This document shows positions 9,861 to 59,543 of a DNA stretch of 64,000 bases, piece by piece (position 1 is the stretch's first letter; the number at the start of each line of letters is the position of its first letter). Both the position numbers and the translations under genes were made by a program. The DNA is taken from the sequence record LR756501.1; one strand, 5' to 3'. The notes under the pieces were generated by a model, which was not told the DNA's origin, did not search any database, and saw only the letters and a list, made by a program, of their open reading frames with translations.

Positions 9861-10281
9861 GAATTATTCAAAATATATAAAAGAAAGTGTTCAACCTGAC
9901 GGACCACCGCCTTTTAATTTAAAAGAGTTTAATCCTTATAACGACGTTTACGCTTATTATAAAGAAAAATATCAAAGTAATGGTTTTGAGTACGGTGAAT
10001 GGTCTAAAAAGTACGTAGATTACATGTTAAAAATATTAGAAAAAGGTAAATTCGTTATATTTTACGGTAATTCAACTTTAAAAGACGGTGAAAAACAAAA
10101 TAGAGGATATATTAAAGACGCTATACAACCAAATGATCAAAAAGCTGTAATTCATATTATTTTAGATGACGATATTGAATACGGTATGTACCCACACGAA
10201 ACAGTTAGAATATTTGATGAAGAACCTGAAAAAATACATAAAGAAGACGATCCGTACGGTGAAGAAGAATGGTATGATTAA
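9853..10281 (+). CDS. CTS-like and C-terminal DPYGEEEW protein
   Basis: Start moved to in-frame ATG at 9853 (MIKNYSKYIKE); ends DPYGEEEWYD*. Confidence 0.75.
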   Translation: MIKNYSKYIKESVQPDGPPPFNLKEFNPYNDVYAYYKEKYQSNGFEYGEWSKKYVDYMLKILEKGKFVIFYGNSTLKDGEKQNRGYIKDAIQPNDQKAVIHIILDDDIEYGMYPHETVRIFDEEPEKIHKEDDPYGEEEWYD

Positions 10282-10324
10282 GCAGAGCCAATTTTAATAT
10301 ATAAAAGAAAAAAGACATCCGCAA

Positions 10325-30313: not shown

Positions 30314-31209
30314 TTTATTAGGCTATCGTCACTTAAATCCTTAATATCGTTTTCCCATATATAAAAAACTTTATAACCAAAAGATTCTGCTAATATCTTT
30401 TTATTCAAATCCCTTCTCCATATAGTTTTTACTCTTTCCTTTTTGAATGGGAATTTTAAAACGTCGTTCTCATTATAGATAACAGGATTGGCGTGCCATA
30501 AATCACTATTAACATCTATCAAAGTATTCTTTATCTTTATATCAAAAAACTTCCTACCAATCATAAATCTTTTAGTATAAGTTATATTCAACTTATCAAG
30601 GCAGTTAGTGACTTTAGATTCTATTGACGAATATATTTTATCAAGGAGGAAATCTTTTTGTTCGTCTGATAGGTTTATCCAGTGATTATAACAGATTCTA
30701 TATAAACTCTTTAATTCATTTTGTACTTCTTCATCTATTGAATCATTTTTCATATTTAATGTCTTGGATATGAATAGGTCACGCAGATTTATGAAATTCT
30801 GTATGCTTTTAGAAGCGTTTAGATTCTTCACAAGTTTCTTATTTTTAACGGATTGGAGTTTTGAAACGTTATCTACTCCATATTTAGTCATACAAGTCTT
30901 TTTGTATTTCTTAGTTGATATTTGTTTAGAACTGACTTTCATAGTTCTTCTTTTGATGTTGTAATAATCTAGAAGAAAGATTATATTCTTGTAACTTATT
31001 CTGTGATCTTTTCTGATCTCTGGTAGACTTTTAAGTTTGACGACGTATTCATCGAAGAGAGTATTCTTAGAACTTATCATGGGGAAGTTATAAGATAGAA
31101 ATTCAAATTTGATTCCTTCCTTTGTCCATACTTTCATGTTCTTGTTACATCTATAAATATGGCGACCGTCGTAGCGGTTGATTCTATTTTTACAAAAAGG
31201 GCAGTGCAT
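30286..31209 (-). mobile_element. free-standing homing endonuclease, Vsr/EDxHD (DUF559)-like, possibly degenerate
   Basis: KYGVDNVSK repeat; SSIESKV...FFDIKI...LIDVNSDLWHANP...RDLNKK..A...GYKVFYIWEND; the usual EVNGDYWH reads DVNSDLWH. Confidence 0.7.
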
Positions 31210-44044: not shown

Positions 44045-44215
44045 TTGAAAGACAGACCTTTAAAAGAAAAAGAGAGTATTTGGCTTTGTCCAGACTGTGA
44101 TGGTAAAGGTTATATTGATAAAGGTCAATGTCCTCTATGTAAAGGTAAAGGTGAACTTAGATTTCCTACCACTTCCTCTCAAAAGGATTTCGAAGATCCC
44201 CAGCCTTCTGATTAA
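44045..44215 (+). CDS. small DnaJ-type CxxCxGxG zinc-finger protein (56 aa, TTG start, not in ORF track)
   Basis: CPDCDGKG...CPLCKGKG; overlaps the terminase 3' end by about 50 nt. Confidence 0.5.
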   Translation: MKDRPLKEKESIWLCPDCDGKGYIDKGQCPLCKGKGELRFPTTSSQKDFEDPQPSD

Positions 44216-46433
44216 ATGGTGATAAGAAAGGTATAGGTTTTATTTCAGGTTTAACTTTAGGATAGAATCTTTTATACGCTCCACTAAATGATTGAAAATC
44301 AACCATTGATCCGTCGTCTTTACTACCTAAAAATTTAAGTATAACTCCTTTTTCTTTTTCTGTAATATTAAAATCTGAATAAGTATCTACCATGTTCTTG
44401 TAATAGTTATTATCAAATAAACTACTTAAATTTATAAGCGACATTACACAGTCATCATTACCTGTTTCCGAACGATAAGTGATCTCCCCGTTTGGAGTCT
44501 CTTTTTTGGAGAATGATTTTAATTCTATGATATTCTTCTCGTTATGAAGTACTAGATTATCTTTCTTCACAGCGTCTTGGAAATCTTTTAGGAGTAATTT
44601 CTTATTGTAACCTATAAGTAATCCTATTTTTGGTTTGGGGTCTGTTTCTCTGTGTTTATATCTGGCAAATATAGCGTCCATAAAATCATTGTTATCATTG
44701 AATACGTGACGCATATTGTTAATTAAATCGTTGCCCAGATTCTTATTCATTTCCACCACTATCTTAACCTTCTCGGGATCAAATATTTCAAATACTAAAA
44801 GATATAATATGTGAGCCACTTCATTTATAGAGTAGACGTTATTTCTGAATAATCCTATTTGTTCTAGTTTGAATAAGTCATATTTATTGGAATAAAAGTC
44901 TTTCTTTTTTTCTATTAGTTTTTCGTCTTTCATCATTAATCTAAAGATGTTAAACACAGTATAATCAAGACCTAACCCTTCTGCCAAGTCTATACCTATT
45001 GTTATATAATAATCTTTAGCTTTGGCTAAATCAAATATTTCTGGATGATCTAGTAAGAAAGTTAGACTATCGTAAGGTAGTGTTAATTTCTTTTCGAAAT
45101 TTTCTAAATGAGGAGTTCCAAATTCGTATTGTTCGTTCATGAAACTTTCAAACATAACACTATCGAACAACAATTTATCGTCTGTAATGAACTGAATCTC
45201 GTACTCTTGATTGAACATCGCCTGGCCACCAATAAGAGATGTTTGCTCTTCTTGCCAGTTAGTTATTCTTACTACTTCGGGTAAAGGTATAACTTCATTT
45301 ATTCTTACTTGCCTTATCTCATCTATTTTACAATTATCTCTTACAGTTTTACCGTCGTCTTCGAAGAATTTAATGAAATACCAAGTTTCTTGTTCAAGTC
45401 TTTTACTATACATCTCGTAACCCAATTCCTTTAAACGGTTTAATATTTCTTCTTGGGTCACGTTGTATTGTCTCATTTTATGTTCAAGAAACATAAACTT
45501 GGTATCTCTTCTACCTTTAACTTGATGCCAGTAGACACGCATGGCTTCGTATTTATTCCATCTTGGATCTTCTTTAGGTCTTTCAGCGTCTACCAATAAT
45601 TCCCAGAATAAATTATAACCATCTGGCGTTGATGTTATAATAATTTTAGAATTTTCTACCTGTACAACAGTAGGTACAACAGCACCGTAGTACTGACGTA
45701 CAATATTCTCTGGTACTTTCGCGAACTCATCGAGATATAACAAGTCAATGGTAAAACCGATGGATGGGTCCTTAGATCTCGCCTGACTCTGAATTCTACT
45801 ATTGTTATCAAAGGCAATCTGCTTTTCGTTCCAGTTTGTTACACCAGTCTTCAAAAAGAAAGGTAATAACTTGTAAATATCTTTTATCTTTCTAATAATT
45901 TCTTTTACAGTATCACCTTTATTAGCCACGATCATAACACCCTTATCGTCATTAAACATAACAAGGTGTAATATAACAATAGAAGCAGATACAGTATTAA
46001 GATTTAATATATCGTTAGCGTAATAACTATGTTCGTTAGACTTTATAGATAAGTCAAACATAGATACTTTATTATTTAATTTGTTAATTGATTTTATTTT
46101 AGAAAGACCTTTCTTTGTTAGAATTATATCGTTAAGAGTTAAATCTTTAACGAATTTAATCATATGTCCTTCGCAGAATATACTATGTATATCGGCACAC
46201 TTTATCTTTAAACCATTTTCAAGTTCAAGTTCGTGTATAGCGTATGGTTGTGTGAAATTGATCTCTTCAATAGGTACAAATCCGTAGTCTGTTTCAACTG
46301 AAAGATTTTCTAATGGTAGAATGTTTATAACCTTTTTCAGAGGATCGTTTTGATCAAATACAACGTTTCTATATTCGTATTTCTCAATTAATTCTAGTAA
46401 TTTATATATAACTCTTCTTAAAAATTTTCGCAT
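44166..46433 (-). CDS. terL: terminase large subunit, C-terminal part, preceded by a 146-aa split C-intein
   Basis: IntC ...KCADIH...MFDLSIK...YYANDILNLN|TVSAS; Walker B IDLLYLDEFA; nuclease IDLAEGLGLDY and NDDCVM. Confidence 0.92.
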   Translation of the reverse strand: MRKFLRRVIYKLLELIEKYEYRNVVFDQNDPLKKVINILPLENLSVETDYGFVPIEEINFTQPYAIHELELENGLKIKCADIHSIFCEGHMIKFVKDLTLNDIILTKKGLSKIKSINKLNNKVSMFDLSIKSNEHSYYANDILNLNTVSASIVILHLVMFNDDKGVMIVANKGDTVKEIIRKIKDIYKLLPFFLKTGVTNWNEKQIAFDNNSRIQSQARSKDPSIGFTIDLLYLDEFAKVPENIVRQYYGAVVPTVVQVENSKIIITSTPDGYNLFWELLVDAERPKEDPRWNKYEAMRVYWHQVKGRRDTKFMFLEHKMRQYNVTQEEILNRLKELGYEMYSKRLEQETWYFIKFFEDDGKTVRDNCKIDEIRQVRINEVIPLPEVVRITNWQEEQTSLIGGQAMFNQEYEIQFITDDKLLFDSVMFESFMNEQYEFGTPHLENFEKKLTLPYDSLTFLLDHPEIFDLAKAKDYYITIGIDLAEGLGLDYTVFNIFRLMMKDEKLIEKKKDFYSNKYDLFKLEQIGLFRNNVYSINEVAHILYLLVFEIFDPEKVKIVVEMNKNLGNDLINNMRHVFNDNNDFMDAIFARYKHRETDPKPKIGLLIGYNKKLLLKDFQDAVKKDNLVLHNEKNIIELKSFSKKETPNGEITYRSETGNDDCVMSLINLSSLFDNNYYKNMVDTYSDFNITEKEKGVILKFLGSKDDGSMVDFQSFSGAYKRFYPKVKPEIKPIPFLSPFNQKAGDLRNPFERKW
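45996..46433 (-). mobile_element. split intein, C-terminal fragment (IntC)
   Basis: Hint-fold blocks B, F, G; terminal Asn followed by Thr+1; no endonuclease. Confidence 0.85.
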
Positions 46434-46484
46434 AAATATGCCTGATTTTTAAGTATATATTAAAAAAGAAAGGCCTATTTTGAA

Positions 46485-47438
46485 TTATGGGGTGTGGCCA
46501 TTGCCTTCTGCTCTTACTAGGAAATCTTCCCAAGGTTCCCAAGAAAACTCGTCATTTTGTTTATTTCTTTGGAACTGCCAACCTAAGTGTTGCATAGTCA
46601 TATTTCTACTTGAGCAATCGTTATAGATTATATTTAATCCGTTATCTTCTATATATTCTATAACTCTATAAGTATCAAATATTGATGGTAAATAATGACC
46701 AGCGTATATTAATTTTTCGTTCAACCCCTTTTTCTTTAACGCGTCTCTATTATCATCGCACACAGAAAGTTCGTGCAAATTAAGATAATCTAATCCAATC
46801 TCATTTAATCTTGGTAAGACTGAGATAAGTTTATCTACTTGCCAAAATTCAGAAGGTACTTCAACACAAATCTTATCAAAAATCTTCTTACAGTAAACAA
46901 GTTTATCTATTATATCTTCTCTATATCCTGTTGCAGCGAGATCAAATCTAATCTCATTAATACCGTGTTCTTTTAATTTAATACAATCTTCTTCTGTAAC
47001 AAGAGTTCCATTAGTATAAATCCATTTATAAAGATTAAGTTGTTCAAAATTTTCGTTGATAAAATCTAACCATTCATATACTTTATCAAGATACATAAAA
47101 GGTTCACCACCAGAAAATGATATACCAGTTATTCTTGGATTCTTATAAATAACTCTTTTTAAATCAACTAAAGAATGTATATCATCGTTACCGCCATTTG
47201 CCCATATGAATTCATCAACACCGTGTCTTGATATTTGTGGACAAGAAGCACATTTAAGGTTACAACTAACACCTATATAAACACATATCCATTGCCCACT
47301 CTTACAGGCGTAACAACCCTGTGATAATTCCTTACCTATTGGTACTATGGTAGCACCTGAATTTGATATTTCTATTTTATCTATAATTCTTTGTCTAAGT
47401 GAGTCTGATATATTTCTAGCATCTACATATTCTATCAT
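46485..47438 (-). CDS. radical SAM protein
   Basis: CNLKCASC CxxxCxxC, SFSGGEP, YTNG; extra N-terminal GCYAC. Confidence 0.88.
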   Translation of the reverse strand: MIEYVDARNISDSLRQRIIDKIEISNSGATIVPIGKELSQGCYACKSGQWICVYIGVSCNLKCASCPQISRHGVDEFIWANGGNDDIHSLVDLKRVIYKNPRITGISFSGGEPFMYLDKVYEWLDFINENFEQLNLYKWIYTNGTLVTEEDCIKLKEHGINEIRFDLAATGYREDIIDKLVYCKKIFDKICVEVPSEFWQVDKLISVLPRLNEIGLDYLNLHELSVCDDNRDALKKKGLNEKLIYAGHYLPSIFDTYRVIEYIEDNGLNIIYNDCSSRNMTMQHLGWQFQRNKQNDEFSWEPWEDFLVRAEGNGHTP

Positions 47439-47454
47439 ATTAAGTTATTATTTT

Positions 47455-48159
47455 TTACGTCAAAATAAAAGACTTTTCGTGTCCTAAAATGACTTCTGTA
47501 TTTACCCATGTTGGGTATCCAATTTCAGCAGCCTTCAAACAAAAAGATACATCTTCCGATGTAAAGTCTGTTATAGTGGTACCATCTTCTGTTTTCATAT
47601 GTATAAATTTTGGTTCAAACCAAGGATATTGAATTTTATCGAAAACTTCTTTTTTTATTAACATAAATCCGAATCCGTTGTATGGAACTTTAATGATAGG
47701 GAAAGATGGTTGTTTACTGAATTTTTCATTAATTATGTCCATTTTATTTATAAATTTGAAACTACCGTTTATCATGAAATGTTTTTCATCCCATTCTTCT
47801 ATGGCGGCGTAATCATCATTATTCTTTAAATATAACCCAGATATTATAGAATATCCCATCTCGGCGTTTTTAAGCAATTTGAAAAAATCATCAGGTTTAA
47901 AAATCATGTCTGAATCGATCCACATAACATAATCAATCGTCGTCCCTTTCATCCCATCTTGATTAAAAATCTTCTGATTAATCCCTCTCTTAACATCTCC
48001 TCCCAAACATTTATTTCTAACATAATAAACAACTGGATCATAGTGTTGAGATACCATAGAGTTTATACCTTTTGTTATTAACGCATGAAGTAATTGAGTC
48101 CAGCTTTGTAAAAATAATCCTGAAAAGTTTTTTCCCGGTAAACAAAAAACTATGTTCAT
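47455..48159 (-). CDS. GT-A-fold (GT2-like) glycosyltransferase-like protein
   Basis: IVFCLPG, VRNKCLG, MWIDSD DxD, GFGFMLIK, SEDVSFC. Confidence 0.7.
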   Translation of the reverse strand: MNIVFCLPGKNFSGLFLQSWTQLLHALITKGINSMVSQHYDPVVYYVRNKCLGGDVKRGINQKIFNQDGMKGTTIDYVMWIDSDMIFKPDDFFKLLKNAEMGYSIISGLYLKNNDDYAAIEEWDEKHFMINGSFKFINKMDIINEKFSKQPSFPIIKVPYNGFGFMLIKKEVFDKIQYPWFEPKFIHMKTEDGTTITDFTSEDVSFCLKAAEIGYPTWVNTEVILGHEKSFILT

Positions 48160-48878
48160 ATCAAATTATTATTTTTTTCATCGTAGATAACAAATATTTC
48201 CCCCAATTCTTCTTTTAGTTCATCTTCAATGTTATTAACAAGTATATTTCTAATATTTATATTCTTACTATCTAATTTAACTTTGTTATCAACCTTGGTG
48301 TTTTCAGTATAAAAAACGTTGTTGAATTGATTGTTATTCAAGAAGATATCGATCTTATTTTTATATTCAGCTTTATCTAACAGTTCACTATTTATTGTAA
48401 TATCTATAAAATCTTTAGTTATATTAATCTGATCAATATCATCTATTTCTTTTATTATATATTCTACAAACCTGGGGCTAAACTTGTTTGGAATGAATTT
48501 AATTTTATTATCTTTGACTATATTATAACCAATTTGATCTGTGCTTTCTTTAGATAGTTGGAATAGTGATATATCTTTAATATCGAAGTTTAACTTATCA
48601 ACTACTTTAATATATTCGTTGAATAAAGGGTAGCAATAATCGTTACCGATCATAAATACATTCGAGAACTGGGTGAGAACACCAAGAATTCTTTTTACTT
48701 CGTTAATAAGATTAAATGTGGTATGTTTATTATTATAAAAGAAATCACCATTAATAATAACTTCATGCTCTTTGGACCCAGATTTCATTAATGTTTGTAT
48801 GAAATCGTGGAAAAAATCTAATTGATATTTAGATAGTTTAGGGTGCCCAAATTTTATGTTAGTAAGTATAAAAATCAT
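48156..48878 (-). CDS. degenerate gp47/SbcD-like metallophosphoesterase
   Basis: LTNIKFG, INGDFFYN and IGNDY align to D-x-H-x-G, GDLFD and GNHD but metal ligands are lost. Confidence 0.5.
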   Translation of the reverse strand: MIFILTNIKFGHPKLSKYQLDFFHDFIQTLMKSGSKEHEVIINGDFFYNNKHTTFNLINEVKRILGVLTQFSNVFMIGNDYCYPLFNEYIKVVDKLNFDIKDISLFQLSKESTDQIGYNIVKDNKIKFIPNKFSPRFVEYIIKEIDDIDQINITKDFIDITINSELLDKAEYKNKIDIFLNNNQFNNVFYTENTKVDNKVKLDSKNINIRNILVNNIEDELKEELGEIFVIYDEKNNNLI

Positions 48879-48980
48879 AATCTATTTATATAGAATACCA
48901 TTAAAAGTTTAATGAAAATACATTGTTAAAAATAAAACAAATGAATATATAGACTATATAAAAAAGAAAACATATATCTT

Positions 48981-49397
48981 ATGAAATATTTATTTTATTT
49001 AATGATCACCGTATCATTATTATTTTTAGGCTCTTGTAATAATCCATCAAAACAAACACCTGTTGTACACCACGACACTATAATTATTCACGACACTATA
49101 AACCTAGCAGGACTAAATGTAGATAGTGCTGAGATTATGTCCCTAAAAGATTTAAAGGGTAGAGGTTTATATTCTAATCATTGTAAATTTTGCCACGGTA
49201 ATAAAGGTAAAGGTGATGGTATTAAAGCCCGTATAGACACAGCACTTTGTCCACACGATTTAACTAAAATAGATAAACCAGATCAATATGTTTATTACGT
49301 AATATTAAAAGGTGATAAACATATGCCACCAAACGAGTCGGATTTAAATGACGAACAAGTATGGATGTTAGTGGTACATATAAAGAAATTTAAGTAA
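48981..49397 (+). CDS. c-type cytochrome lipoprotein
   Basis: Lipobox LGS-C; CKFCH heme motif at 49182-49196 followed by G..GKGDG; distal MPP. Confidence 0.85.
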   Translation: MKYLFYLMITVSLLFLGSCNNPSKQTPVVHHDTIIIHDTINLAGLNVDSAEIMSLKDLKGRGLYSNHCKFCHGNKGKGDGIKARIDTALCPHDLTKIDKPDQYVYYVILKGDKHMPPNESDLNDEQVWMLVVHIKKFK

Positions 49398-49432
49398 ACA
49401 AAAAACCCAGTCAAATGACTGGGTTTTCTTTT
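49398..49432. terminator. bidirectional terminator (CCCAGTC family)
   Basis: AAAAACCCAGTC-AAAT-GACTGGGTTTT. Confidence 0.85.
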
Positions 49433-49443
49433 TAAAGTTAAAA

Positions 49444-50232
49444 TTATTTTGAAAGTAAAGCTATTAAACTATTTAATAATTGTTTGTGAATATTTTGTGG
49501 TATATTTGTTACAACTGAAAAATTGTTATTTCCAGATATTTTAATTTGACCAAAACTTTCATTTAATAATCTATCTGGTTTTGATGTCTTTAAAAAATGT
49601 CCAACAAGAGCATTCATAAATGGTTGAATCTCAAAAGCTTTATCGTTATTTCTTATAACGTGAATTTCATTTTGTTTTTCAGTTAAAAGGTACCAGTAAT
49701 CTTCTTTTGATAGAAGTCTTTTTTCGAACATTGTATTTATATCTGAAAATTTAATATCTTTATAATAAATTAATTTACCTATTGTTTTAACTCTTTCAAT
49801 TGTTAAATCTACTTGGTTATCAGGTGTATTTTTTTCAGTTTCTTCTTCTTCGTCTTCGATTACTGTTTTCTTTTTCTGTTGCACTCTTTCTACTGGTTTT
49901 TCAGTTTTCTGTGGAGGTGGAGTTTGAGTAGATGATACAGGAGCAATAGCTGCCTCTGTAAATTTTCTTATTGTAGTTTTATTTTCAAATGCCCTATTTT
50001 TAGGATAATGCTCTGTAACATCATCGATAGTAACTTTAACTGCTCCACCATTTTTAGCTTTTATAAGATAGTAGTTTTCATATACACCAGATACTTCGCC
50101 TCTAATTTCTCTACTGTTATAGATAGCAACAAGAATATCCCCTACTTTAACTGGATTTACGTTCTCAGTAACAGGTAGTTCTTCCACTTTTATATTAGCG
50201 TTATATAAGTTATATAATTCGTGCAATTCCAT
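49444..50232 (-). CDS. hypothetical protein: SH3-like N-terminus, linker, domain paralogous to 14332-14718
   Basis: VKVGDILV...GEVSGVY; C-terminal alignment by eye. Confidence 0.7.
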   Translation of the reverse strand: MELHELYNLYNANIKVEELPVTENVNPVKVGDILVAIYNSREIRGEVSGVYENYYLIKAKNGGAVKVTIDDVTEHYPKNRAFENKTTIRKFTEAAIAPVSSTQTPPPQKTEKPVERVQQKKKTVIEDEEEETEKNTPDNQVDLTIERVKTIGKLIYYKDIKFSDINTMFEKRLLSKEDYWYLLTEKQNEIHVIRNNDKAFEIQPFMNALVGHFLKTSKPDRLLNESFGQIKISGNNNFSVVTNIPQNIHKQLLNSLIALLSK

Positions 50233-50311
50233 ATTTCTATCTAAAAATAAAGGTCTATCATCATTGGAGAGGTAGATAGACCCTTATTCGTATTACTTAT
50301 TTTTTATTTTA

Positions 50312-50830
50312 TTATATAGCCTGTCCGCCACCTTGTGCTGGAGGTATCTGAGCTGCTGTCTGTTGTGCTCCTTGTGCTGGAACTTGTGCTTGTCCGCCTT
50401 GTGGAACTTGTGCTTGTGGTTGTGCACCTGGTTGTCCTTGTGCCTGTGGTTGAGCAGGTAATTGAGCTTGAGCAGGTTGTGTTTCATCAAGATCTTCTGT
50501 TTGTGATTGTGGACCTTGTGCTTGTGCACCTTGAGCCTTTGCGTATTGATCACCCAAGATTAAGTTAACAGGAAGGTTTTCGATGCTAACATATGATGTG
50601 ATGATATAATCTGCAATTTCTTCTGATAATTCAACGTCAGAATAGAATTGGCTGATGTTTTTACCACTTTCGTCTTTTACTTTCTTTTTGAAAGCGTTAA
50701 CGAGAGACATAGGAATATCAATACGTTTTCTAACTCTATAAACGTCGTCGACAGCTTGAACGTTTTCAGTTAAAGGTGTGATATTTCTTTTACCTTGAAA
50801 TTCTCCAAATTCGTATAAATTCTTGTTCAT
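50312..50830 (-). CDS. hypothetical protein with Q/A/P/G low-complexity tail
   Basis: MNKNLYEFGEF; AQPQAQGQP repeats; late box at 50853. Confidence 0.75.
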   Translation of the reverse strand: MNKNLYEFGEFQGKRNITPLTENVQAVDDVYRVRKRIDIPMSLVNAFKKKVKDESGKNISQFYSDVELSEEIADYIITSYVSIENLPVNLILGDQYAKAQGAQAQGPQSQTEDLDETQPAQAQLPAQPQAQGQPGAQPQAQVPQGGQAQVPAQGAQQTAAQIPPAQGGGQAI

Positions 50831-50879
50831 AATTTTAACTTTATTTTTTATGTATATATTAATATTTTATTCTGTTTTT

Positions 50880-51179
50880 TTATCTTCTTGTGACCCTTTT
50901 ACTCACCTTTAAATAATATTTTGTTTCACCGTTCTTTTCCATTGATATAACATCCATTATCATATATCCTAGTGGGGAAATTAAATTTGTTATTCTATCC
51001 ATTACCAAATCTTCATCGTTATCATATTTATCCATATTTACTTTTATTTTATCTACTATATCTAAAATTTCCTTTTTATAATTTTTAGGAAAACACTTAG
51101 CAAATTTTTTAACAGATATAAATATGCCTAAAGGTACATTAATAGAAATCTCCTCAAATAATTTAATATATCCTTTCAT
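50880..51179 (-). CDS. hypothetical protein with CTS-like N-terminus
   Basis: MKGYIKLFEE; late box at 51185. Confidence 0.7.
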   Translation of the reverse strand: MKGYIKLFEEISINVPLGIFISVKKFAKCFPKNYKKEILDIVDKIKVNMDKYDNDEDLVMDRITNLISPLGYMIMDVISMEKNGETKYYLKVSKRVTRR

Positions 51180-51208
51180 GCTACTATATATTAAAGTTTA
51201 AAACTGGT

Positions 51209-52027
51209 TTATTTGCCCCATCGCCAGTTCCATATTGAATAATGTAATGAAACACCCATACTCCAACCAAATCTAGGATTTGCTAAGTTATAATCTGTGT
51301 TTAATCCAAATCCAATATATGGTCCAAATCCAAAATTAGGTCTTGGCTTAGGTGCTGGTGCTGGTTGTTTATTAATAATATAAGCTCCTTCTAATCCACT
51401 CACTTTTAGAACTGGAGATTTATTAATAATAAACACTTCATACTTTTCTTTCGACTCTCTCATACCGTATTGTAAATGTAGTGTGGTTAAATTAGTTGTG
51501 AATAGTGTAGTATCTGGTTTTAATATCCATTTCTTAGTAGTTTCATCTGGGTAAGCGTAGAATCTGCTTTGTCCTTCTATTTTCTGTGAAAAACTAGAAT
51601 CAGCGTAATTAAAACCAAAATCTAATCCGTATTTATTTGTTTGTTTATCAACTATTGTGAGTTTATTGCCTGCTGATATACCACCAAGATCTCCAGTTAC
51701 TTTAGCGTCGATATATGCGATAACGTCACCTTTTACTTTACTTATTTGATCGTAAAGTTTTTGGTTATACGCTTTTAAGTCTTTAAGCTCATTAACTACG
51801 TAGTTATCTTTGGATATTTCGTAGGCTTTTAATTTCTTATTGAATTCGATAGTTATACTATCTTTCATGGCACTCATATTTTGAGCGTCCTGTTTCTGTT
51901 GATATTCCCACGTGGCTCTTTCGTTTCTTAAAGTGCTACACGTTGTGAAGAATAATGTAAATCCTATAATACAGAGTACAAAAAGTGCAATAGGATAATA
52001 TTTTTTAATAATTTCCAGTGTAGTCAT
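51209..52027 (-). CDS. envelope protein: N-terminal TM helix, coiled coil, C-terminal amphipathic beta-hairpin (lysis/spanin-like candidate)
   Basis: IALFVLCIIGFTLFF; FGFGPYIGFGL...FGWSMGVSLHYSIWNW. Confidence 0.55.
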   Translation of the reverse strand: MTTLEIIKKYYPIALFVLCIIGFTLFFTTCSTLRNERATWEYQQKQDAQNMSAMKDSITIEFNKKLKAYEISKDNYVVNELKDLKAYNQKLYDQISKVKGDVIAYIDAKVTGDLGGISAGNKLTIVDKQTNKYGLDFGFNYADSSFSQKIEGQSRFYAYPDETTKKWILKPDTTLFTTNLTTLHLQYGMRESKEKYEVFIINKSPVLKVSGLEGAYIINKQPAPAPKPRPNFGFGPYIGFGLNTDYNLANPRFGWSMGVSLHYSIWNWRWGK

Positions 52028-52067
52028 AATTAATTTTTATTTTATATATTAAAAGGTTTTAGTCCTA

Positions 52068-54137
52068 TCAGAGATTACTCACGTTTTGTTGAGGAGCTTT
52101 TAACGGTAATTCGCCGTATTTTTTAGTTATCACTCTAGTATTTATGTAATTGGTTTTCACTGTTCTATTAGTTAATATTGAAGTCTTATTACACGCCAAA
52201 TTTCCAAATATACCTGTTACCCATACACCTCCCCAGAATACACCGTAGAAATTGCCTTCATGAAATGTTCCTCCGAAAAATCCTCCAAACCAAGGGCCAG
52301 TTGCACAATCAACGTAACCGTTATAGAAATTACCACCGTAAAAATCTCCATTGTACCAATTTATGTAAGTAGAAGCGGCAGGATGCCCAAATGTTCCGTT
52401 ATTAAAAGTTCCACCACTCCAATTTATAGATGGTTCTGCACTATTTATTAGTACACCAAGTGTTCCGCTATTCCATATACCAGTTTCCCAATCAACGTTA
52501 TGGAAATAAGAATTATTAACTGTTCCATTTTTAAAATTACCATTTAACCAGTTACTATTTGTAAATGTTCCGTACCTAAATGTGCCATCGTACCATAGAC
52601 TACTATCTATAAAATTTCCGTCGTTGAATGTTCCACCACTCCAAACACTATTACTGAATACTCCACCGTTAAAAGTTCCAGTTTTCCAACCTTTACTAGG
52701 ATTAGAATAATTTATTGTTTCACCTGATATACTAGCAGCGTTATTACCAGAATTAAATACACCCCCGTTAAATTTACCATTATTCCAATAAGAATTAGAT
52801 AATCTACCACCGTTAAATGTACCATTAGACCAATTTATATCTGTAAGAGTTCCATCGTAACAAGTACCATTAATCCAGTTAGTGTTCAATAAAGATCCAC
52901 CGTTACAAGCACCGTTGTACCAATTACATTGTTGCATATTTCCACCGTTAAAAGTTCCATTTGCCCATTCAGTATTTTTTATTAAACCACCACTAAATGT
53001 TCCACCACTCCAAATACTATTTTCCATTGTTCCGCCTTGAAACAATCCATTTCTCCAAGTAGATCCAGAGAAAATTCCGTCATTGAAAACTCCGTCTCTC
53101 CATTCTTTACCTATGAAACTTCCACCGTTCCAAATACCATTATACCAAATATCTTGTGTAAAAGTACCACCACTCCAAATACCATTAAACCAATAACAAT
53201 CTGCGTCAAGTGGAGTATTGTAAAAAATACCACCATTTATAGTGGAAGCTTTTATTTCAGAATTTGTGAATAATCCACCATTTATAGTACATTCTGTTAA
53301 AACACAATTATCGTAATAACCGTTATCTATTTGGCAATTATGTAGATGATTATAATAAATGTAATTATAACCGTAACTATTATTGTTATTAGTGTAATAA
53401 GATGAAACTGGTGTAGGATCTTGGTTTAATGTATCAGTGCCTTTATAAACATAAGGTTTGTAAACTGAAGCAGTTGTTCCAGTGTTTATTGATGAATTTG
53501 TTGTGATATATAAATTATCGTATTTATCTTTATATCTCATGAAGAAAGATACTCCACTAAATACAACAGCCTGAACTAAATTTATGTCTATCGCTACGTC
53601 AGCTCCTGTATTAAAATTAGCATTGATAATTTCAGCCCCGTCTATTTCACCACCAGTCAAAGTGATATTCCTTATGTATATTTCAGCAATATAATGATCA
53701 TATATCTTCTTATTAACAAATCTATCGTCGTAATACCTATCAATTGTTATCTCGTTATTATTATCATTTATTTCAATTACCGTATATCCTTGTAATTGAG
53801 GAAGATATATATAATTAGTACAACCAGAAAATTCCAGATAGTTATCTAGTATCACGCTATCAGTTGTGCCTGAAGTTGTACCTGAAGGGTTGAACATTAT
53901 AAATATTTTATCACCAACTCGTATATTTGAATTTATTTCTGTGTATAATTTTATCTTTCCACCGTTGTTAGTAATAACAGGTAATAATTTCACAGCATTT
54001 GGCGCTTGTGAATAATTGGTATTATTGAACACATTAATTTTTTCTTGTTGAGGTACTGTTTGTACTACGTCTTGAATTGGTTGTGTTCCTGATGTTGTTA
54101 CTACTAAATCTTGTGAAAAAATATCAGCCGTTGGCAT
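52068..54137 (-). CDS. putative structural beta-helix protein with W-x-N-G-x-F-N-G-G repeats
   Basis: About 15-aa periodic repeats in the C-terminal half; late box at 54158. Confidence 0.65.
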   Translation of the reverse strand: MPTADIFSQDLVVTTSGTQPIQDVVQTVPQQEKINVFNNTNYSQAPNAVKLLPVITNNGGKIKLYTEINSNIRVGDKIFIMFNPSGTTSGTTDSVILDNYLEFSGCTNYIYLPQLQGYTVIEINDNNNEITIDRYYDDRFVNKKIYDHYIAEIYIRNITLTGGEIDGAEIINANFNTGADVAIDINLVQAVVFSGVSFFMRYKDKYDNLYITTNSSINTGTTASVYKPYVYKGTDTLNQDPTPVSSYYTNNNNSYGYNYIYYNHLHNCQIDNGYYDNCVLTECTINGGLFTNSEIKASTINGGIFYNTPLDADCYWFNGIWSGGTFTQDIWYNGIWNGGSFIGKEWRDGVFNDGIFSGSTWRNGLFQGGTMENSIWSGGTFSGGLIKNTEWANGTFNGGNMQQCNWYNGACNGGSLLNTNWINGTCYDGTLTDINWSNGTFNGGRLSNSYWNNGKFNGGVFNSGNNAASISGETINYSNPSKGWKTGTFNGGVFSNSVWSGGTFNDGNFIDSSLWYDGTFRYGTFTNSNWLNGNFKNGTVNNSYFHNVDWETGIWNSGTLGVLINSAEPSINWSGGTFNNGTFGHPAASTYINWYNGDFYGGNFYNGYVDCATGPWFGGFFGGTFHEGNFYGVFWGGVWVTGIFGNLACNKTSILTNRTVKTNYINTRVITKKYGELPLKAPQQNVSNL

Positions 54138-54226
54138 TATAAGGTTTTATTTTACTCTATATATTAAATTTTGAAAACTAAATCACAAAAAAATAATATA
54201 ATTTAAAAATAAGTGAATAATGTAAC

Positions 54227-54595
54227 ATGAATGACGATGTAGAGAGTAAAAAGAAAGAACTAAAAGAAAGACTGGAAAGTGACTTATACGTTGATAGATA
54301 TAGCTCTTTTAGAGAGTCAGTTGAACTTATCAATAAAGCACTTGAGTCTTTTAAAATTAACTATCAGTACACTTATAACGAATTTTGTTCTGATTTTACA
54401 GATGAATGTTTGAAATACATTGACGAACATCCAAAAGTAGATATGACCGATCCACAACAAATGATGGTATATACTTTTCCAATAGTTATGTCGATAGTGG
54501 ATCGTGCAAAAAATAAATACGGAATCAAAGATGATAAACATAATAGCGAGATTATTGAACAACAGGTTCAAAAAGAAGATGGAGAAAAGCAATAA
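54227..54595 (+). CDS. hypothetical protein
   Basis: 122-aa ORF. Confidence 0.65.
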   Translation: MNDDVESKKKELKERLESDLYVDRYSSFRESVELINKALESFKINYQYTYNEFCSDFTDECLKYIDEHPKVDMTDPQQMMVYTFPIVMSIVDRAKNKYGIKDDKHNSEIIEQQVQKEDGEKQ

Positions 54596-54699
54596 ACCAT
54601 TAACAAAAAAGAAATTAGTACCTCTTGTTTATGGAGGTATTCCAAAACCACCAAGACCTAAAATTAGAACTGTCGGTGAGTAAAAAGTAATTAACGAAC

Positions 54700-55323
54700 A
54701 TGATTAATTTTATAGCAAACAAACTAAATAATAGATATAAAAGGCTTTTAGAAGAAGATATAGAAAGACAGATAGCTGAAGACGAAAGAAAGAAAGCCGA
54801 AGAAGAAAGATTAGCAAATATACCACTAAATATTCCAGATAATAAATGGTGGGTTAGTAGTAATCCTATTGAAGAGGATAAATGGTACGATGGTGTATTT
54901 TCAAGTGGCACTACAATACCAGATAGTAAATGGTCAAACGGTACTTGGTTAGGAGTATCTGGATCATCTGGTTACGGAGTATCAGGAAGTGCCGGTGTAT
55001 CAGGTAGTGCAGGCGTATCAGGAACTAGAGGACTTAGTGGATCATCTGGTTTTTCAGGGACTTCTAGTTATTCTAATCCAGGTATAAAATACGCTGAATA
55101 TTTAGCAGAACAAATAGATAAATCTATAAATTATCAAGAATATATAGCAGAACAACTTGATAAAAGTATTCAATATAGTGAATATGTAGCTGAGCATATT
55201 GATGTAACAAATTATACAAATTGGATGAACGGTTACGCTCAAGCACACGCTAAACCAAAAAAAGAAGTTAAAAGGGTTTATAGTCAAGAAGATCCTTACG
55301 GTGAAGAAGATTGGTCAGTATGA
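54700..55323 (+). CDS. mosaic protein: GxSGSS repeats, 14-aa YxEYxAExxDKSIx repeats, C-terminal DPYGEEDW
   Basis: Read directly from the translation. Confidence 0.75.
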   Translation: MINFIANKLNNRYKRLLEEDIERQIAEDERKKAEEERLANIPLNIPDNKWWVSSNPIEEDKWYDGVFSSGTTIPDSKWSNGTWLGVSGSSGYGVSGSAGVSGSAGVSGTRGLSGSSGFSGTSSYSNPGIKYAEYLAEQIDKSINYQEYIAEQLDKSIQYSEYVAEHIDVTNYTNWMNGYAQAHAKPKKEVKRVYSQEDPYGEEDWSV

Positions 55324-55640
55324 TGAAGATAAGACACGTTATTGAGAACGACATAGTTGAAGATATATCAGTTTATAAAAACATATATCAAGACTTCATA
55401 GATTTAATCAAAACGGAAATAGACGAGAATTACGTTCCTAGTTTTACTTTTAACGAATTTTGCGCTATGCTAATAGATAATTTCGAAGGAGTCGACGACG
55501 ATATAAACGACTACTCAGAAACTAAAGGTAATCCACTGACTAATAAGTTATTAAACTCACTTATGGTAATAACAATGAATGAGTTTAAAGATGACGAAGA
55601 AGCTACTGAAAAAATAGCTAAAATTATCAAAAATATGTAA
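55320..55640 (+). CDS. hypothetical protein
   Basis: ATGA-coupled ORF. Confidence 0.6.
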   Translation: MMKIRHVIENDIVEDISVYKNIYQDFIDLIKTEIDENYVPSFTFNEFCAMLIDNFEGVDDDINDYSETKGNPLTNKLLNSLMVITMNEFKDDEEATEKIAKIIKNM

Positions 55641-55817
55641 TAAATTGGGTGTTTCGGACCGCATTTTTTTAATATATAATGTGTATTAAATTTTCAAACT
55701 TTAACGAAAGTTTAGTATAGAATAAATGTGGTTCTGCAGAACACTAAAGGCTTTTTCAGGCATTAAATGGAGTAATGGGAGTTATGGCTTTCATTGATAA
55801 AAAAAATCGTATGCATT

Positions 55818-56849
55818 ATGGCAGAGTACAAAGACAAAGATGAAAATTGGATGTTTGATTCATCAAATGACGAACAAAACCAAGAGTTGGCTTTCTTAAA
55901 CAAGGAAACCAAAAACCAAGACGGTATTTATCGTCCAAACGTAAAAGACGCAGCAGACCCTAAGGGTGCTGGTTACAAAGCAACAATCAGATTTCTTAGA
56001 AACGTATTTTTAGATGGCTCGGGCACAGGTCCAGCAGCTATTACAAAGCACGTTCACTATGTTAAACCAGAAGGTTCTTTAGAGGACTATCCAGATTTAG
56101 CAGGATATTATGATTGTGAAAAGAATGTTTCTCAACAAACACCATGTCCGTTGTGCCAAACTTATTGGAAACTTTTTAAATCCAATAATCAGGCAGATGT
56201 TATCAAGTCTGGTTTAATCAAAAGGAGTACTAAATTTTATTCCTATATTATGGTTATCGAAGACGAACAACATCCCGAGTTGGTTGGTAAAATTTTAGTT
56301 TATCCTTACGGAGCTAAGATCAAAGGAAAAATCAATTCAGAAATTAACGGTGATGTTAGTGGAGAGAAATGTAATATTTTCGACTTCGTAACAGGAAAGG
56401 ATTTTAGACTTATTATTAAGATAGTTAAGACTCCAAATCCAAATGGTAGTGGCACAGTTGATATGCCAAACTACGACACCAGCACATTCTTACCATCTTC
56501 ACCTATCAAAATTTGGAACGAGAAAACAAGTAAATTTGTTACTCCTCCAACAACAGAAGATGAAAACGGTAAAATTATGCTCACAGACAAGAAATGGCAA
56601 GCTAAGATCAGAGAAATCATTTTAGCTCGTCCAGCCAATGTAAATCTTGACGACCATACACCTTCAAAGGACGGATGGGACGACGCTAAGAGATCAAATG
56701 TGGAGAAAATTGTTCAGGTTCTTAACGGAAACAGTGTTCAATATGCTGAATCGTCAGTAAAGAAATCTAGTGTGAAAACACCAGCGGCAGAAGTAATTGA
56801 AGAGGAATCTTTCGACGATCTCTTTGATTTCGAAGCAGATGATAAGTAA
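55818..56849 (+). CDS. single-stranded DNA-binding protein (T4 gp32-like)
   Basis: YKATIRFL, H...C...CPLC Zn site, YSYIMVIEDEQHPELVGKI, G.DFRL, NYD.S.F, acidic tail; start moved to ATG 55818. Confidence 0.85.
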   Translation: MAEYKDKDENWMFDSSNDEQNQELAFLNKETKNQDGIYRPNVKDAADPKGAGYKATIRFLRNVFLDGSGTGPAAITKHVHYVKPEGSLEDYPDLAGYYDCEKNVSQQTPCPLCQTYWKLFKSNNQADVIKSGLIKRSTKFYSYIMVIEDEQHPELVGKILVYPYGAKIKGKINSEINGDVSGEKCNIFDFVTGKDFRLIIKIVKTPNPNGSGTVDMPNYDTSTFLPSSPIKIWNEKTSKFVTPPTTEDENGKIMLTDKKWQAKIREIILARPANVNLDDHTPSKDGWDDAKRSNVEKIVQVLNGNSVQYAESSVKKSSVKTPAAEVIEEESFDDLFDFEADDK

Positions 56850-56869
56850 TCTAAATTTTCATTCTAAAA

Positions 56870-56902
56870 GAAAAGCCCTCAATTTTTTGAGGGCTTTTTT
56901 TT
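56870..56902 (+). terminator. rho-independent terminator
   Basis: AAAAGCCCTC-AATTTTTT-GAGGGCTTTT plus Ts. Confidence 0.8.
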
Positions 56903-56914
56903 ATATATAGTGTT

Positions 56915-57172
56915 ATGGAAAAATATATTAAAAAATTCGAACAGGTTAGTGATGAATCTAATAGAATAAAACTATTAGAGGAAGAGATAATTAAAAGAGA
57001 CGAATTGATTTACTCTATGATGAGGAATCTATCACATGGTTACATGAATTTCATGGCTGATAAAACCATAGATATAGATGAAATGCGTAGAAGATTCAAA
57101 ACGGAAGAAGTAGTGAATAGACCATTAGTGAGAGAAAGAATAGATCTCTTACATAAAGATATTATAGGATAA
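56915..57172 (+). CDS. hypothetical protein with CTS-like N-terminus
   Basis: MEKYIKKFEQ. Confidence 0.65.
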   Translation: MEKYIKKFEQVSDESNRIKLLEEEIIKRDELIYSMMRNLSHGYMNFMADKTIDIDEMRRRFKTEEVVNRPLVRERIDLLHKDIIG

Positions 57173-57714
57173 TGAAAGTATTTAAAGTTAACGAGTTATT
57201 CGAAATGAGTCAGACTTATGTTTACAAGCCTGTTTCTGAAAAGAGGAGTGGTTTCAAAAACATGACTACTTATGTTTATAATTTTGTTTCAGACGACGGC
57301 ACTGAATACCTAGTAGATATAGTATTATATTCAAAAACTGTTCTTAATATAAAAACAAATAAACTAAAAACTAAGGTTTTTGCGACCACTTGTTTTGCTA
57401 ATAAGGAAAACTATAACAGAGGTAAAAGATTTAAATGGAAATACAAATTAACTAATAAACATGACGCTATTAAAGTTTTAAATACTGTTATAAAGATTAT
57501 AAAAGATTTTTCAGATAGTCATAATATGGATGAATTTGGAATTAATACGTCAAAAGATAGGTTGGAAACATATAAATATATTTTCAATAAATATTTTAAA
57601 GGTTGGAAAGTTTTTGTTTCTATTGATGATTCGTATTATTTAGATACAAGATTTAATATAATCTGCACAAAAGAATCTAAAGAAGATAATCCAAATAATT
57701 TTATCGTTGCTTAA
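57172..57714 (+). CDS. hypothetical protein
   Basis: MKVFKVNELFE; TAATG coupling. Confidence 0.7.
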   Translation: MKVFKVNELFEMSQTYVYKPVSEKRSGFKNMTTYVYNFVSDDGTEYLVDIVLYSKTVLNIKTNKLKTKVFATTCFANKENYNRGKRFKWKYKLTNKHDAIKVLNTVIKIIKDFSDSHNMDEFGINTSKDRLETYKYIFNKYFKGWKVFVSIDDSYYLDTRFNIICTKESKEDNPNNFIVA

Positions 57715-57938
57715 AGATTATTAGAAACAATGAAGTCAGAAAAATCTTTTAGAGTAGTTAACTCGTAATCATTTATATTAAACCCACGTGTTGAATCCCC
57801 AGCGATATTACTTGATAAATTATCAAATAAAATTACACAAGAAGTCTCTTCATCGGAAGAAACATTAGTTAAAATTATAAATGTTTGATTTGTAATAGTT
57901 CCAGTTTTTGATTTTAAAATATCTCCTAATTTATACAT
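57711..57938 (-). CDS. hypothetical protein (SH3-like YKLGDIL start)
   Basis: ORF downstream of the methyltransferase. Confidence 0.55.
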   Translation of the reverse strand: MYKLGDILKSKTGTITNQTFIILTNVSSDEETSCVILFDNLSSNIAGDSTRGFNINDYELTTLKDFSDFIVSNNL

Positions 57939-57947
57939 TTTTTCTTT

Positions 57948-58802
57948 TTATTTTTTTAAAGGCATAGTAGGACCAGTTATAATAAACTCTCTTTCCGCCT
58001 TCTTTTCTATTTTCTTTTCACCTGTTTTTATTCCAATAAATGTTCCTCTACTACTTGTATGATAATAACCGTTAGTCATTGATTCATGCACATTATCACC
58101 AATATTATCAAATTGTTCAAATACTAAATCAAAACCAGATTCCTTTAAACTATGTAATATCCACTCCCTAGTTATCCAAAAAGATCTGATCCACCCTTGA
58201 CTGGTGTTCTTATTTTCCCAACCAGCGAAATTATGCAACTCTTTAGTTTCTAACGGTATATCTTCAGGGTATTCCCAAAACCATCTACCGTCTACACCGT
58301 TTTCATTGGTTATTTCTTTCAAATTCCAATTTATACTTTCTTCAAAATCAGGATCTAGTGGTCTTTCTGTAGCAAAATGTGTTTGTATTATTAACACTTT
58401 TTTTGTAATTTTAGAAATCATATTTATAAACTCTCTTGGTTTATCTAAATGATATAATAACCCACCACAATATACAGCGTCAAATTCTCCGTATTTTTGT
58501 GAATTCCAAACATCGTCTTTGTAAAATTCTACATTCTTTAATCCCGAATGCTTCTTATTTAAAAGACAGGCTTGATAATTCATATCTCGAACTTCTACTC
58601 CAACAGATTTAAACCCCATTTTTGCAAATTCGATAGCGTATCCTCCATCCAGACAGCCCAAGTCTAAAATGTTATAGTCTTGCTTATCTTTCGGGAAAAC
58701 GACGTCTAAAACTCTTTTAGTTGATTTAAACCAAGGCTTGTTGGCTGTAATCTTTTCATCTATCTTTACTTCAACCCCGTTCTCAATTAGTGCGTGTTTC
58801 AT
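57948..58802 (-). CDS. class I SAM-dependent methyltransferase
   Basis: ILDLGCLDGGY, GVEVR, FDAVYCGGLLYHL. Confidence 0.85.
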   Translation of the reverse strand: MKHALIENGVEVKIDEKITANKPWFKSTKRVLDVVFPKDKQDYNILDLGCLDGGYAIEFAKMGFKSVGVEVRDMNYQACLLNKKHSGLKNVEFYKDDVWNSQKYGEFDAVYCGGLLYHLDKPREFINMISKITKKVLIIQTHFATERPLDPDFEESINWNLKEITNENGVDGRWFWEYPEDIPLETKELHNFAGWENKNTSQGWIRSFWITREWILHSLKESGFDLVFEQFDNIGDNVHESMTNGYYHTSSRGTFIGIKTGEKKIEKKAEREFIITGPTMPLKK

Positions 58803-58804
58803 AT

Positions 58805-58972
58805 TTAATCTAATTTTTCTAATAACTTATATAAGAACACTTTAACTTTTTCTAAAGTTGTTAATTTTCTATGTTTTGCTAGTGTTTGGTAATATAATTT
58901 ACCTATATTTATTTTATAGACGTATCCTGTTGGATCGTCCATTACAGTAAGAACAGATGTAAAATCGATACA
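58805..58972 (-). mobile_element. split intein, N-terminal fragment (IntN)
   Basis: Cys1 immediately after the Walker A Lys; CIDFTSVLTV...KINIGKLY resembles the short IntN of atypically split TerL inteins. Confidence 0.85.
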
Positions 58973-59350
58973 TTTACCAACCTGTCTTGAAGCCATTAAA
59001 ATACTATATCTGTTTTCAGTATAGAGTTTAATAATATCTTTTTGGTAATCTCTAAGTTTCATTTGTCCTACAGTACCATCTTCCAATTTAATTTTACAAT
59101 AATGCTCGGCGAAATAATATACTGATAATTTACATTTAATATATTCTTCTAACTCCTCGGGAGTCATAGCAAATTTGATACCTTTTCTACGTACTCCTTC
59201 TAAGTTATTGAACCATAATTTCTCTGTTCTCTTTAATTGTAGAGCTAGTTTTTCTTTCTCTAAAATTTCACGAACCTTTATCGTTGTTATGATATTGGTC
59301 TCGTCACGTTTAGCATCAGCTCTAATAGTTTCCTCTTTTTTCTTTGCCAT
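58805..59350 (-). CDS. terL: terminase large subunit, N-terminal part, ending in a 55-aa split N-intein
   Basis: YFAEHYCKI, LRDYQKDII, Walker A ASRQVGK|CIDF. Confidence 0.92.
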   Translation of the reverse strand: MAKKKEETIRADAKRDETNIITTIKVREILEKEKLALQLKRTEKLWFNNLEGVRRKGIKFAMTPEELEEYIKCKLSVYYFAEHYCKIKLEDGTVGQMKLRDYQKDIIKLYTENRYSILMASRQVGKCIDFTSVLTVMDDPTGYVYKINIGKLYYQTLAKHRKLTTLEKVKVFLYKLLEKLD

Positions 59351-59543
59351 AATTTAAAATTTTTGTCTAAAAAACTAGTTTCCAGAATTTTTTTTTAATA
59401 TATATAAAATACTTTATGACCAAATTACAAACAACCACATTTCTATTATTTTTTAAAAATTATTAAACCTTATATTGAGATTAGTATATAAAATCAATAT
59501 GAAGTGGAGGTATTGGTATGCCGCGAAAAAAGAATAATTAAAC

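Follow-up and report, generated by a model that had tools for sequence, protein, structure and literature searches.

The large terminase gene of a 735-kb phage lies in two pieces 12.4 kb apart that are very probably rejoined by an atypically split intein

The genome LR756501.1, a record of 735,411 bp named 'uncultured phage', carries the gene of its large terminase subunit (terL) as two open reading frames (ORFs), terL-N and terL-C, which lie on the same strand with more than 12 kb between them. We consider it very probable that terL is a fractured gene and that its halves are joined after translation by a natural, atypically split intein of class 1. The window analyzed here is a stretch of 64,000 nucleotides from this record (record coordinate = window coordinate + 565,060), and its features are listed in Table 1. 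The 735-kb genome was placed in the Mahaphage clade, with Bacteroidetes as the predicted host, by Al-Shayeb et al. 2020, in which inteins and a split terminase go unmentioned (PMC7162821). Identical (100%) tblastn matches of both terL ORFs were found only in LR756501.1 and LR756503.1.

A preliminary description, made from the letters of the window, had read the first ORF as an extein ending in RQVGK followed by Cys and a 55-amino acid (aa) N-terminal intein fragment (IntN), and the second as a 146-aa C-terminal fragment (IntC) that ends in Asn and is followed by TVSAS. Both ORFs were found on the minus strand as described. Residues 1-126 of TerL-N gave tblastn alignments to the TerL N-termini of thousands of phages, and the N-extein was 48% identical to residues 11-119 of the intact 710-aa TerL of LR745206.1, a 634-kb relative that was used as the intein-less reference. 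IntN is composed of Cys1 (Cys127 of TerL-N), a beta-hairpin and two helices, with a tail of the form RKLTxxEKxKxFLYKxLxKL. In the AlphaFold2 (AF2) model of TerL-N, the strands (133-137, 144-148) and helices (149-160, 165-180) of IntN were predicted with a local distance difference test score (pLDDT) of 82-93. A cluster search restricted to proteins of similar length returned TerL-N homologues in 176 clusters (165-190 aa, 50-97% identity), all of which covered the whole of TerL-N including IntN and shared its end point. Cys1, Y153, E167, K170 and Y174 were invariant in all 26 sequences. In a search of PDB sequences, IntN by itself produced no more than chance matches.

The C-extein was 43% identical to the reference TerL over 549 aa, with the alignment starting exactly at GK/T (the slash marks the splice site here and below), and Pfam Terminase_6N matched residues 152-288 of TerL-C (E 1.6e-8). 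IntC carries block B as A80 D81 x H83, the Asp of block F at D127 and a terminal Asn146; D81, H83, D127, N146 and T147 were invariant among 24-31 sequences. Homologues of TerL-C that start with IntC formed 426 clusters when the first 220 residues were used as the query. The AF2 model of IntC had a mean pLDDT of 90.2, and its top 50 matches in the PDB by Foldseek were all inteins or BIL domains at probability 1.00, including 6dsl, the atypically split Cat-TerL. Sequence searches of the PDB with IntC returned inteins only (NrdJ-1, gp41-1, TFIIB, CatC), and the profile E-values were 1.5e-6 for gp41-1 and 6.7e-5 for CatC. The sequence hallmarks, the HINT fold (AF2 pLDDT 90) and these matches bear out the earlier identification of an intein. 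Its split was rightly called atypical: since blocks B, F and G are all within IntC, the break is N-proximal, ahead of block B, and leaves a short IntN and a long IntC.

The break falls within the Walker A motif. Joining SRQVGK and TVSAS gives SRQVGKTVSAS, and the intein-less proteins read SRQVGKTISAS (LR745206.1) and SRQIGKTISAS (P0390, see below). Because the uninterrupted TerL of LR745206.1 reads so at this place, excision of the intein would rebuild the Walker A loop exactly, as the preliminary description had proposed. Conceptual splicing gives a protein of 735 aa, and intact TerLs of 710-732 aa align with it over the full length. The product matches PF03237 and has the Walker B motif LYLDEF, as expected for a T4-type large terminase (Terminase_6) with ATPase and nuclease. 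The two ORFs are kept separate by a TAA after LEKLD and by an in-frame TAA 18 nt before the ATG of IntC. As judged from the sequences, the match of a split intein to this junction is far beyond chance, because intein-less orthologues read SRQVGK-TISAS exactly across it and the split recurs in 176 (TerL-N) and 426 (TerL-C) clusters. The cleavage position of trypsin coincides with the splice junction K/T, and the sequence spanning the junction is ...SRQVGKTVSASIV....

Ratios of nonsynonymous to synonymous substitution (dN/dS) were 0.09 for IntN against the closest relative, 0.07-0.16 for IntC and 0.01-0.1 for the exteins, which indicates that both intein halves are under purifying selection. Between the window and its closest relative L095, the C-extein was 97% identical and IntC 79% (dS 1.6 versus 0.6). 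This difference suggests that the intein segment has been exchanged among lineages independently of the extein.

Several observations count against this interpretation. The Pfam Intein_splicing match on TerL-C (E 9e-6) is under the gathering cut-off, the Thr of block B is replaced by Ala in IntC, and the penultimate His of block G is Leu (ILNLN) in the window and Leu or Ile throughout its clade. The dN/dS of IntN rises to 0.3-0.5 in saturated pairs. A conserved 390-aa terL paralog is present elsewhere in the genome, and L149, a relative nested in the clade of the window, manages with an uninterrupted terL that has no intein, which means that a genome of this type can do without the split. The penultimate residue is Ile in P0155 and the canonical His (ILSHN/T) in almost all other members of the family.

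An intact terL elsewhere had been named in the preliminary description as an outcome that would refute its reading. The remainder of LR756501.1 was fetched in 15 pieces and searched by tblastn with the four segments and one intact TerL as queries; no intact terL was found in the 735-kb genome, and at E<1 no terL-like sequence was detected besides the 390-aa paralog. This truncated protein has no intein and no nuclease domain, and its Walker A reads SRQMGIT (Lys to Ile). It is not able to substitute for TerL and may be a pseudo-ATPase. Paralogs with the same substitution occur in L143 (83%) and L144 (69%), and the stop is identical in L143, the sole one that reaches the 3' end.

We propose that terL-N is transcribed from its own promoter-like box and yields the 126-aa N-extein with the 55-aa IntN, and that terL-C, in a separate unit with TATATA at -26, yields the 146-aa IntC with the 609-aa C-extein. 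The beta-hairpin of IntN would then complete the HINT fold of IntC. The extra amphipathic helices of the two fragments (IntN 165-180 and IntC 2-20), which are consecutive in contiguous versions of the intein, probably pack together. With Cys1, Thr+1 and Asn146, standard protein splicing would produce the 735-aa TerL with the P-loop SRQVGKTVSAS. The features of both halves lead us to infer strongly that TerL is trans-spliced, and because there is no other complete terL in the genome, packaging should depend on it.

The preliminary description had also assigned a TATATA-type box to each half. Both boxes are present, but the motif is not special to terL. TATATA precedes 33 of the 69 genes in the window, most often 26-31 nt before the ATG, and its density in intergenic DNA is about 10-fold that in coding DNA, so it is better seen as a promoter-like element of general use, probably a promoter class that belongs to the phage itself. 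A AATATATA-type box is also found upstream of terL-C in seven of the compared relatives. The TATATA of terL-N (~59398-59406, 54-56 nt upstream of the ATG) is inside a GGTCATAA-N4-5-TTTTATATATA block whose position is conserved in the window (WIN), M42261, M9694, M45006, L016 and L007. A scan for sigma-70-type promoters returned 88 sites against 91 expected, which is no enrichment. The ATG of a methyltransferase gene lies 2 nt past the stop of terL-N, and the two genes are probably co-transcribed. Opposite-strand genes and a bidirectional terminator-like hairpin lie between the halves, and the halves therefore appear to belong to different transcription units.

Table 1. Positions of the terL halves, the DNA between them and other features discussed in the text
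Feature	Sequence	Position	Strand	Description
terL-N	window	58805..59350	-	181-aa precursor, N-extein + IntN; stop TAA 58805-58807
N-extein	window	58973..59350	-	aa 1-126, ends ...SILMASRQVGK, first half of Walker A
IntN	window	58808..58972	-	55 aa (residues 127-181), CIDFTSVLTV...KLLEKLD, then stop
terL-C	window	44166..46433	-	755-aa precursor, IntC + C-extein; in-frame TAA 18 nt upstream of ATG
IntC	window	45996..46433	-	146 aa, MRKFLRRVIY...SYYANDILNLN; N-terminal helix aa 2-20, then beta-rich HINT core
C-extein	window	44169..45995	-	609 aa from TVSASIVILH...; Thr+1 is the T of Walker A GKT; remainder of ATPase + nuclease domain
Spacer	window	46434..58804	both	12,371 bp, 17 ORFs: radical SAM, GT2, p240, cytochrome c, p262, Q172, p99, p272, p689, p122, p207, p109, gp32 SSB, p85, p180, p75, methyltransferase
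GT2 + radical SAM stretch	window	46485-48159	-	part of the spacer; GT2 glycosyltransferase and radical SAM protein
Cytochrome c gene	window	48981-49397	+	lipoprotein-like, PF13442
Hairpin	window	49400-49429		bidirectional, terminator-like
p689	window	52068-54137		pentapeptide-repeat protein in the spacer
Opposite-strand genes	window	54227-57714		opposite to terL
gp32 SSB gene	window	55794..56849	+	gp32-type single-stranded DNA-binding protein (SSB), opposite to terL; PF08804 E 1e-13
TATATA box of terL-C	window	46454-46459	-	26 nt upstream of the ATG, the modal distance for the motif in the window
Promoter-like element of terL-N	window	59398..59421	-	GGTCATAA-N4-5-TTTTATATATA
Vsr-like ORF	window	30286-31209	-	free-standing, 307 aa
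RNR gene	window	60358-63840	+	ribonucleotide reductase; contains a contiguous intein
RNR intein	window	61273-62208	+	312 aa, active-site motif NP/CGE, HNH-like segment
terL paralog	LR756501.1	699,854-701,026 (= L115:22854-24026)	-	390 aa, N-terminal + ATPase domains, PF03237 E 2.4e-14
IntC of closest relative	L095	10001-10438
Intact terL (P0390)	L149 (Logan SRR32054271_233910)	6027-8225		between the window's flanking genes
terL with different intein	L124	2995-6189
terL-N with IntN	L018 (IMGVR_UViG_3300025715_000014)	10001-10477

The spacer had been described as about 12.4 kb with about 15 genes on both strands, including the SSB gene and no recognisable endonuclease. Counting ORFs of 75 aa or more, we found 17 on the two strands, among them the gp32-type SSB (PF08804), and detected no endonuclease domain or remnant in 46434-58804 by Pfam or by tblastn with the endonucleases from the spacers of relatives. 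The gp32 SSB is 79-88% identical among collinear relatives. The methyltransferase-p75-p180-p85 group, the cytochrome c gene and GT2 are missing from these relatives, and the radical SAM gene is shared only with L095; from this distribution, all of them look like later, accessory additions.

The separation of the halves is not unique to this genome and characterises a whole clade. With both halves on the same contig, the spacer measures 9,015-9,018 bp in 3300042261_000671, 12,036 bp in 3300009694_000016 and in 3300009692_000037, and 12,319 bp in 3300045006_000141. The order in the clade is that of the window: RNR, p249, terL-N, gp32, three or four small genes, p689, (p272), Q172, p262, p240, terL-C and A288. 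More than 10 kb of the same block is found in L092, L093 and L016/L017, and L095 has 94% identity. The block core is also collinear, in part, in L092, L095 and L016.

Relatives outside this clade keep the halves much closer together. Among 80 IMG/VR loci found with TerL-N and surveyed for their arrangement, terL-N always precedes terL-C on the same strand. The gap from stop to start is 41-42 bp in L054 and L028, and other classes of gaps are ~0.7-1.1 kb, usually with a single ORF, or up to 4.5 kb with two to four ORFs. An endonuclease gene lies between the halves in relatives including L011, L044, L033, L120, L046 and L145. The ORF common in these spacers, of ~325 aa, has a zinc finger of the Ros/MucR type joined to a Vsr-like nuclease (DUF559/MTES_1575), and the spacers of other relatives encode DUF7487 or GIY-YIG proteins. 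Contigs with a split terL reach 0.59-0.71 Mb, and the order on a 590-kb scaffold is terL-N, MTES_1575/Vsr-like gene, terL-C and GIY-YIG gene. Alleles without the intein lie among fractured ones in the C-extein tree, very short distances apart, e.g. L012/L037 (branches 0.013, 0.009), L120/L126 and L021/L084, and the split cassette therefore appears to be still gained and lost.

In L018, terL-N with IntN has no terL-C within 10 kb downstream, and homologues of p74 and p309, which are 3' of terL-C in the window, lie 6.4 kb downstream of terL-N; this may be another arrangement of the terL halves. No terL-C partner was recovered for terL-N of L016/L017 or of L018. The window also contains a free-standing 307-aa ORF, 13 kb from terL-C and outside any recognised split gene, whose C-terminus resembles the Vsr-like endonucleases in the terL spacers of relatives (tblastn E ~1e-7).

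IntC alone, searched against 1.84 billion representatives, had 689 relatives. Most are at the N-terminus of a protein, as expected for a split intein, and a few are internal, as expected for a contiguous one. Some start at query residue ~33, which corresponds to a shorter IntC like that of AceL-TerL. In the contiguous inteins P0268 and P0243, the helix of the IntN tail (RKLTLTEKVKRQIYRYY...) is directly followed by the helix of the IntC head (...LLKVIQFIEKIEYRH), so the break lies between two successive helices of a lineage-specific insertion. Further contiguous inteins also have both helices in tandem. We had considered that an overlapping tandem duplication with complementary loss produced the similar IntN tail (FLYKLLEKL) and IntC head (VIYKLLELIEK), and rejected it because P0268 and P0243 already carry both helices. 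A contiguous copy of the window's own intein was sought in IMG/VR, and only split, intein-less or different-intein genes were found. L124 and L081/L082 have a different intein of ~344 aa at the same K/T of terL; it starts with Ala, has LAGLIDADG-like motifs and ends in THN/T. The P-loop site is thus targeted by at least two unrelated inteins.

Synteny comparison, which the preliminary description had proposed, supports its suggestion that the halves were separated by a later rearrangement. In other relatives the halves are neighbours or have no more than an endonuclease gene between them. The sister clade (L013 fractured; L036 and L039 intein-less) has gp32 (-) and, further on, p689 (+), p272, Q172, p262 and p240 (+) between p249 and terL, directly upstream of the whole terL; in L041/P0395, terL follows p249 and gp32 is downstream. 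The window order (p249, terL-N, block, terL-C) differs from that of L013 by a transposition of the 0.55-kb terL-N cistron or of the block. Such a transposition would be tolerated only if terL already consisted of two independently expressed cistrons. No single inversion or translocation interconverts the arrangements of L149, L013 and the window.

When the C-extein alone was the query, IntC stood at the start of 29 of the 30 closest clusters (at least 69% identity). The exception, P0390, is an intact, intein-less TerL of 732 aa that is 82% identical and nested in a clade of 37 members (Shimodaira-Hasegawa-like approximate likelihood ratio test, SH-aLRT, 99; inner nodes 96 and 93). Contig L149, which carries it, matches both flanks of the window at 73-89% identity, with RNR and p249 on the left and A288, p74, p309, p218, p197 and p1285 on the right; p109-gp32 is inverted and lies on the far side of the RNR gene. 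A sliding-window comparison around the P0390 junction showed no foreign donor tract. The nested position implies that L149 represents the re-fusion of a gene once split by 9-12 kb, and the state with the long spacer would then be stable but not irreversible. A strict lock-in, in which essential genes in the spacer make the split irreversible, is weakened by P0390/L149, where the block has been relocated past RNR.

From these arrangements we infer an order of events. A mini-intein in the P-loop would have been split by a free-standing homing endonuclease gene, a stage that survives in many relatives. The endonuclease would have been lost in the clade of the window, and the ~9-kb block from gp32 to p240, which flanks terL in the sister clade, would have come between the halves. 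Later additions may then have brought the spacer to 12.4 kb.

Other explanations for the two ORFs have to be weighed against protein splicing. The ORFs could form a two-chain terminase whose intein-derived fragments associate non-covalently and never splice, and the split NrdA of Aeh1, reported to be assembled by interaction domains, is a precedent of a fragmented phage enzyme put together in this way (PMC3045599). The lost penultimate His in the window's clade would agree with this, and the extra helices of both fragments could be a pure dimerisation module. We think it improbable, since the break is inside the P-loop at GK/T and an unspliced complex would hold 201 intein residues in the ATP-binding loop, and since Cys1 and the terminal Asn are invariant family-wide though needless for mere association. 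Many natural inteins splice without the penultimate His. It is very unlikely that the ORFs are decaying remnants of terL, with packaging done by the 390-aa paralog or by a terminase unrecognisable by sequence. A second terL-like gene does exist and is conserved in relatives, but both halves are full-length, are under strong purifying selection and have been kept in dozens of lineages at 69-97% identity, whereas the paralog has neither the Walker A lysine nor any part of the nuclease domain, and no other terL-like sequence was found in the 735 kb at E<1.

The genome is a manually curated metagenome assembly (PMC7162821), so the 12.4-kb interval might have been wrongly inserted between adjacent halves during assembly or curation, a chimera that the preliminary description had allowed for. 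This is hardly credible, because the same order occurs in independently assembled contigs from other samples, with spacers of 9,015, 12,036, 12,036 and 12,319 bp and only 70-80% protein identity. Joining at the RNA level, by a group I or II intron or by trans-splicing, has a parallel in the group I introns that split terL of other huge gut phages (PMC12880540). We give it next to no weight: Rfam found no RNA family, introns included, over the whole window, opposite-strand genes lie in between, and the sequence at each break point is a conserved intein half, in frame and translated, with a HINT fold.

If protein splicing joins the halves, the separation may have been put to use. Two transcription units, each with its box, and a helix clamp could act as a post-translational AND-gate that times or limits packaging; we regard this idea as rather doubtful. 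If true, it would place an AND-gate on active terminase in a very large, slowly replicating genome, and the ATPase-only paralog without the lysine might be part of the same control. Regardless of such use, protein trans-splicing is probably the only route by which the largest sequenced phage, and with it a whole clade of huge phages, obtains an enzyme that is essential for virion assembly. The graded series runs from a contiguous intein through halves separated by 41 bp, halves on either side of an endonuclease gene and halves with 9-12 kb and core genes between them to a re-fused gene. It would document how inteins become split, how they spread and end up stranded, and how they can disappear again. 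The natural atypical Cys1/Thr+1 split inteins form a large family (hundreds of clusters), and their extra helix per fragment could be of use in protein engineering. In annotation, terL will be missed or truncated in the gene calls and trees of huge phages unless its halves are joined.

A second intein occurs in the window, contiguous and inserted in the RNR gene. The RNR of relatives ranges from 1081 to 1564 aa in length, which suggests that its intein content differs between lineages.

Among known systems, contiguous inteins occupy the same P-loop region of TerL in Vibrio phage VAP7/VP-1, Campylobacter phage CP220 and P0268/P0243, and tblastn alignments to such inteins cover residues 33-146 of IntC and the initial ~28 residues of IntN. 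Unlike the halves in the window, these are single polypeptides that splice in cis. Cyanobacterial DnaE is an essential enzyme encoded by two distant genes, rebuilt by protein trans-splicing and fixed across its clade. The TerL described here is likewise a two-gene essential enzyme with a clade-fixed arrangement, for which trans-splicing is predicted. The DnaE intein is split at the canonical site, the insertion point of the endonuclease, and resides in a cellular genome with its halves hundreds of kb apart on opposite strands. Endonuclease-bearing intermediates are not known for DnaE, whereas the relatives of the window preserve a graded series from 41 bp to >12 kb.

The natural atypical split inteins AceL-TerL and GOS-TerL and the consensus Cat intein (Thiel 2014; Bachmann & Mootz 2015; Stevens 2018, as summarised in PMC11766414) are among the closest known systems. 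They share with the present intein a phage large terminase as host, a metagenomic source and an N-proximal split ahead of block B. The profile alignment of IntC with CatC spans positions 38-145 (E 6.7e-5), and the IntC model superposes on Cat (PDB 6dsl) with a template modelling (TM) score of 0.73 normalised to the target. IntN has 55 aa here against 25-37 aa and IntC 146 aa against ~104 aa, an excess that equals one extra helix on each side of the break. Cys1/Thr+1 also differ from the Ser1/Cys+1 of GOS-TerL, and the insertion point in TerL is therefore probably another one.

Dassa et al. 2009 (PMC2677866) described split intein halves around a free-standing homing endonuclease, with terminase among eight host proteins; they defined the Vsr-like family and described GIY-YIG endonucleases. 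The terL of the window resembles these fractured genes as a phage gene in pieces with new start and stop signals, and many of its relatives have that very layout. It differs in that the spacer is without an endonuclease and 12.4 kb instead of ~1 kb long, with 17 genes on both strands including the SSB gene, and in that the halves are predicted to be in different transcription units. The arrangement belongs to a known kind, with precedents in the TerL inteins that are atypically split in nature, in fractured genes and in the widely separated intein halves of cyanobacterial dnaE. New are the endonuclease-free spacer of many genes, core genes among them, that is fixed across a clade of huge phages, the split intein extended by one helix per fragment, and the preserved intermediates including a reversion.

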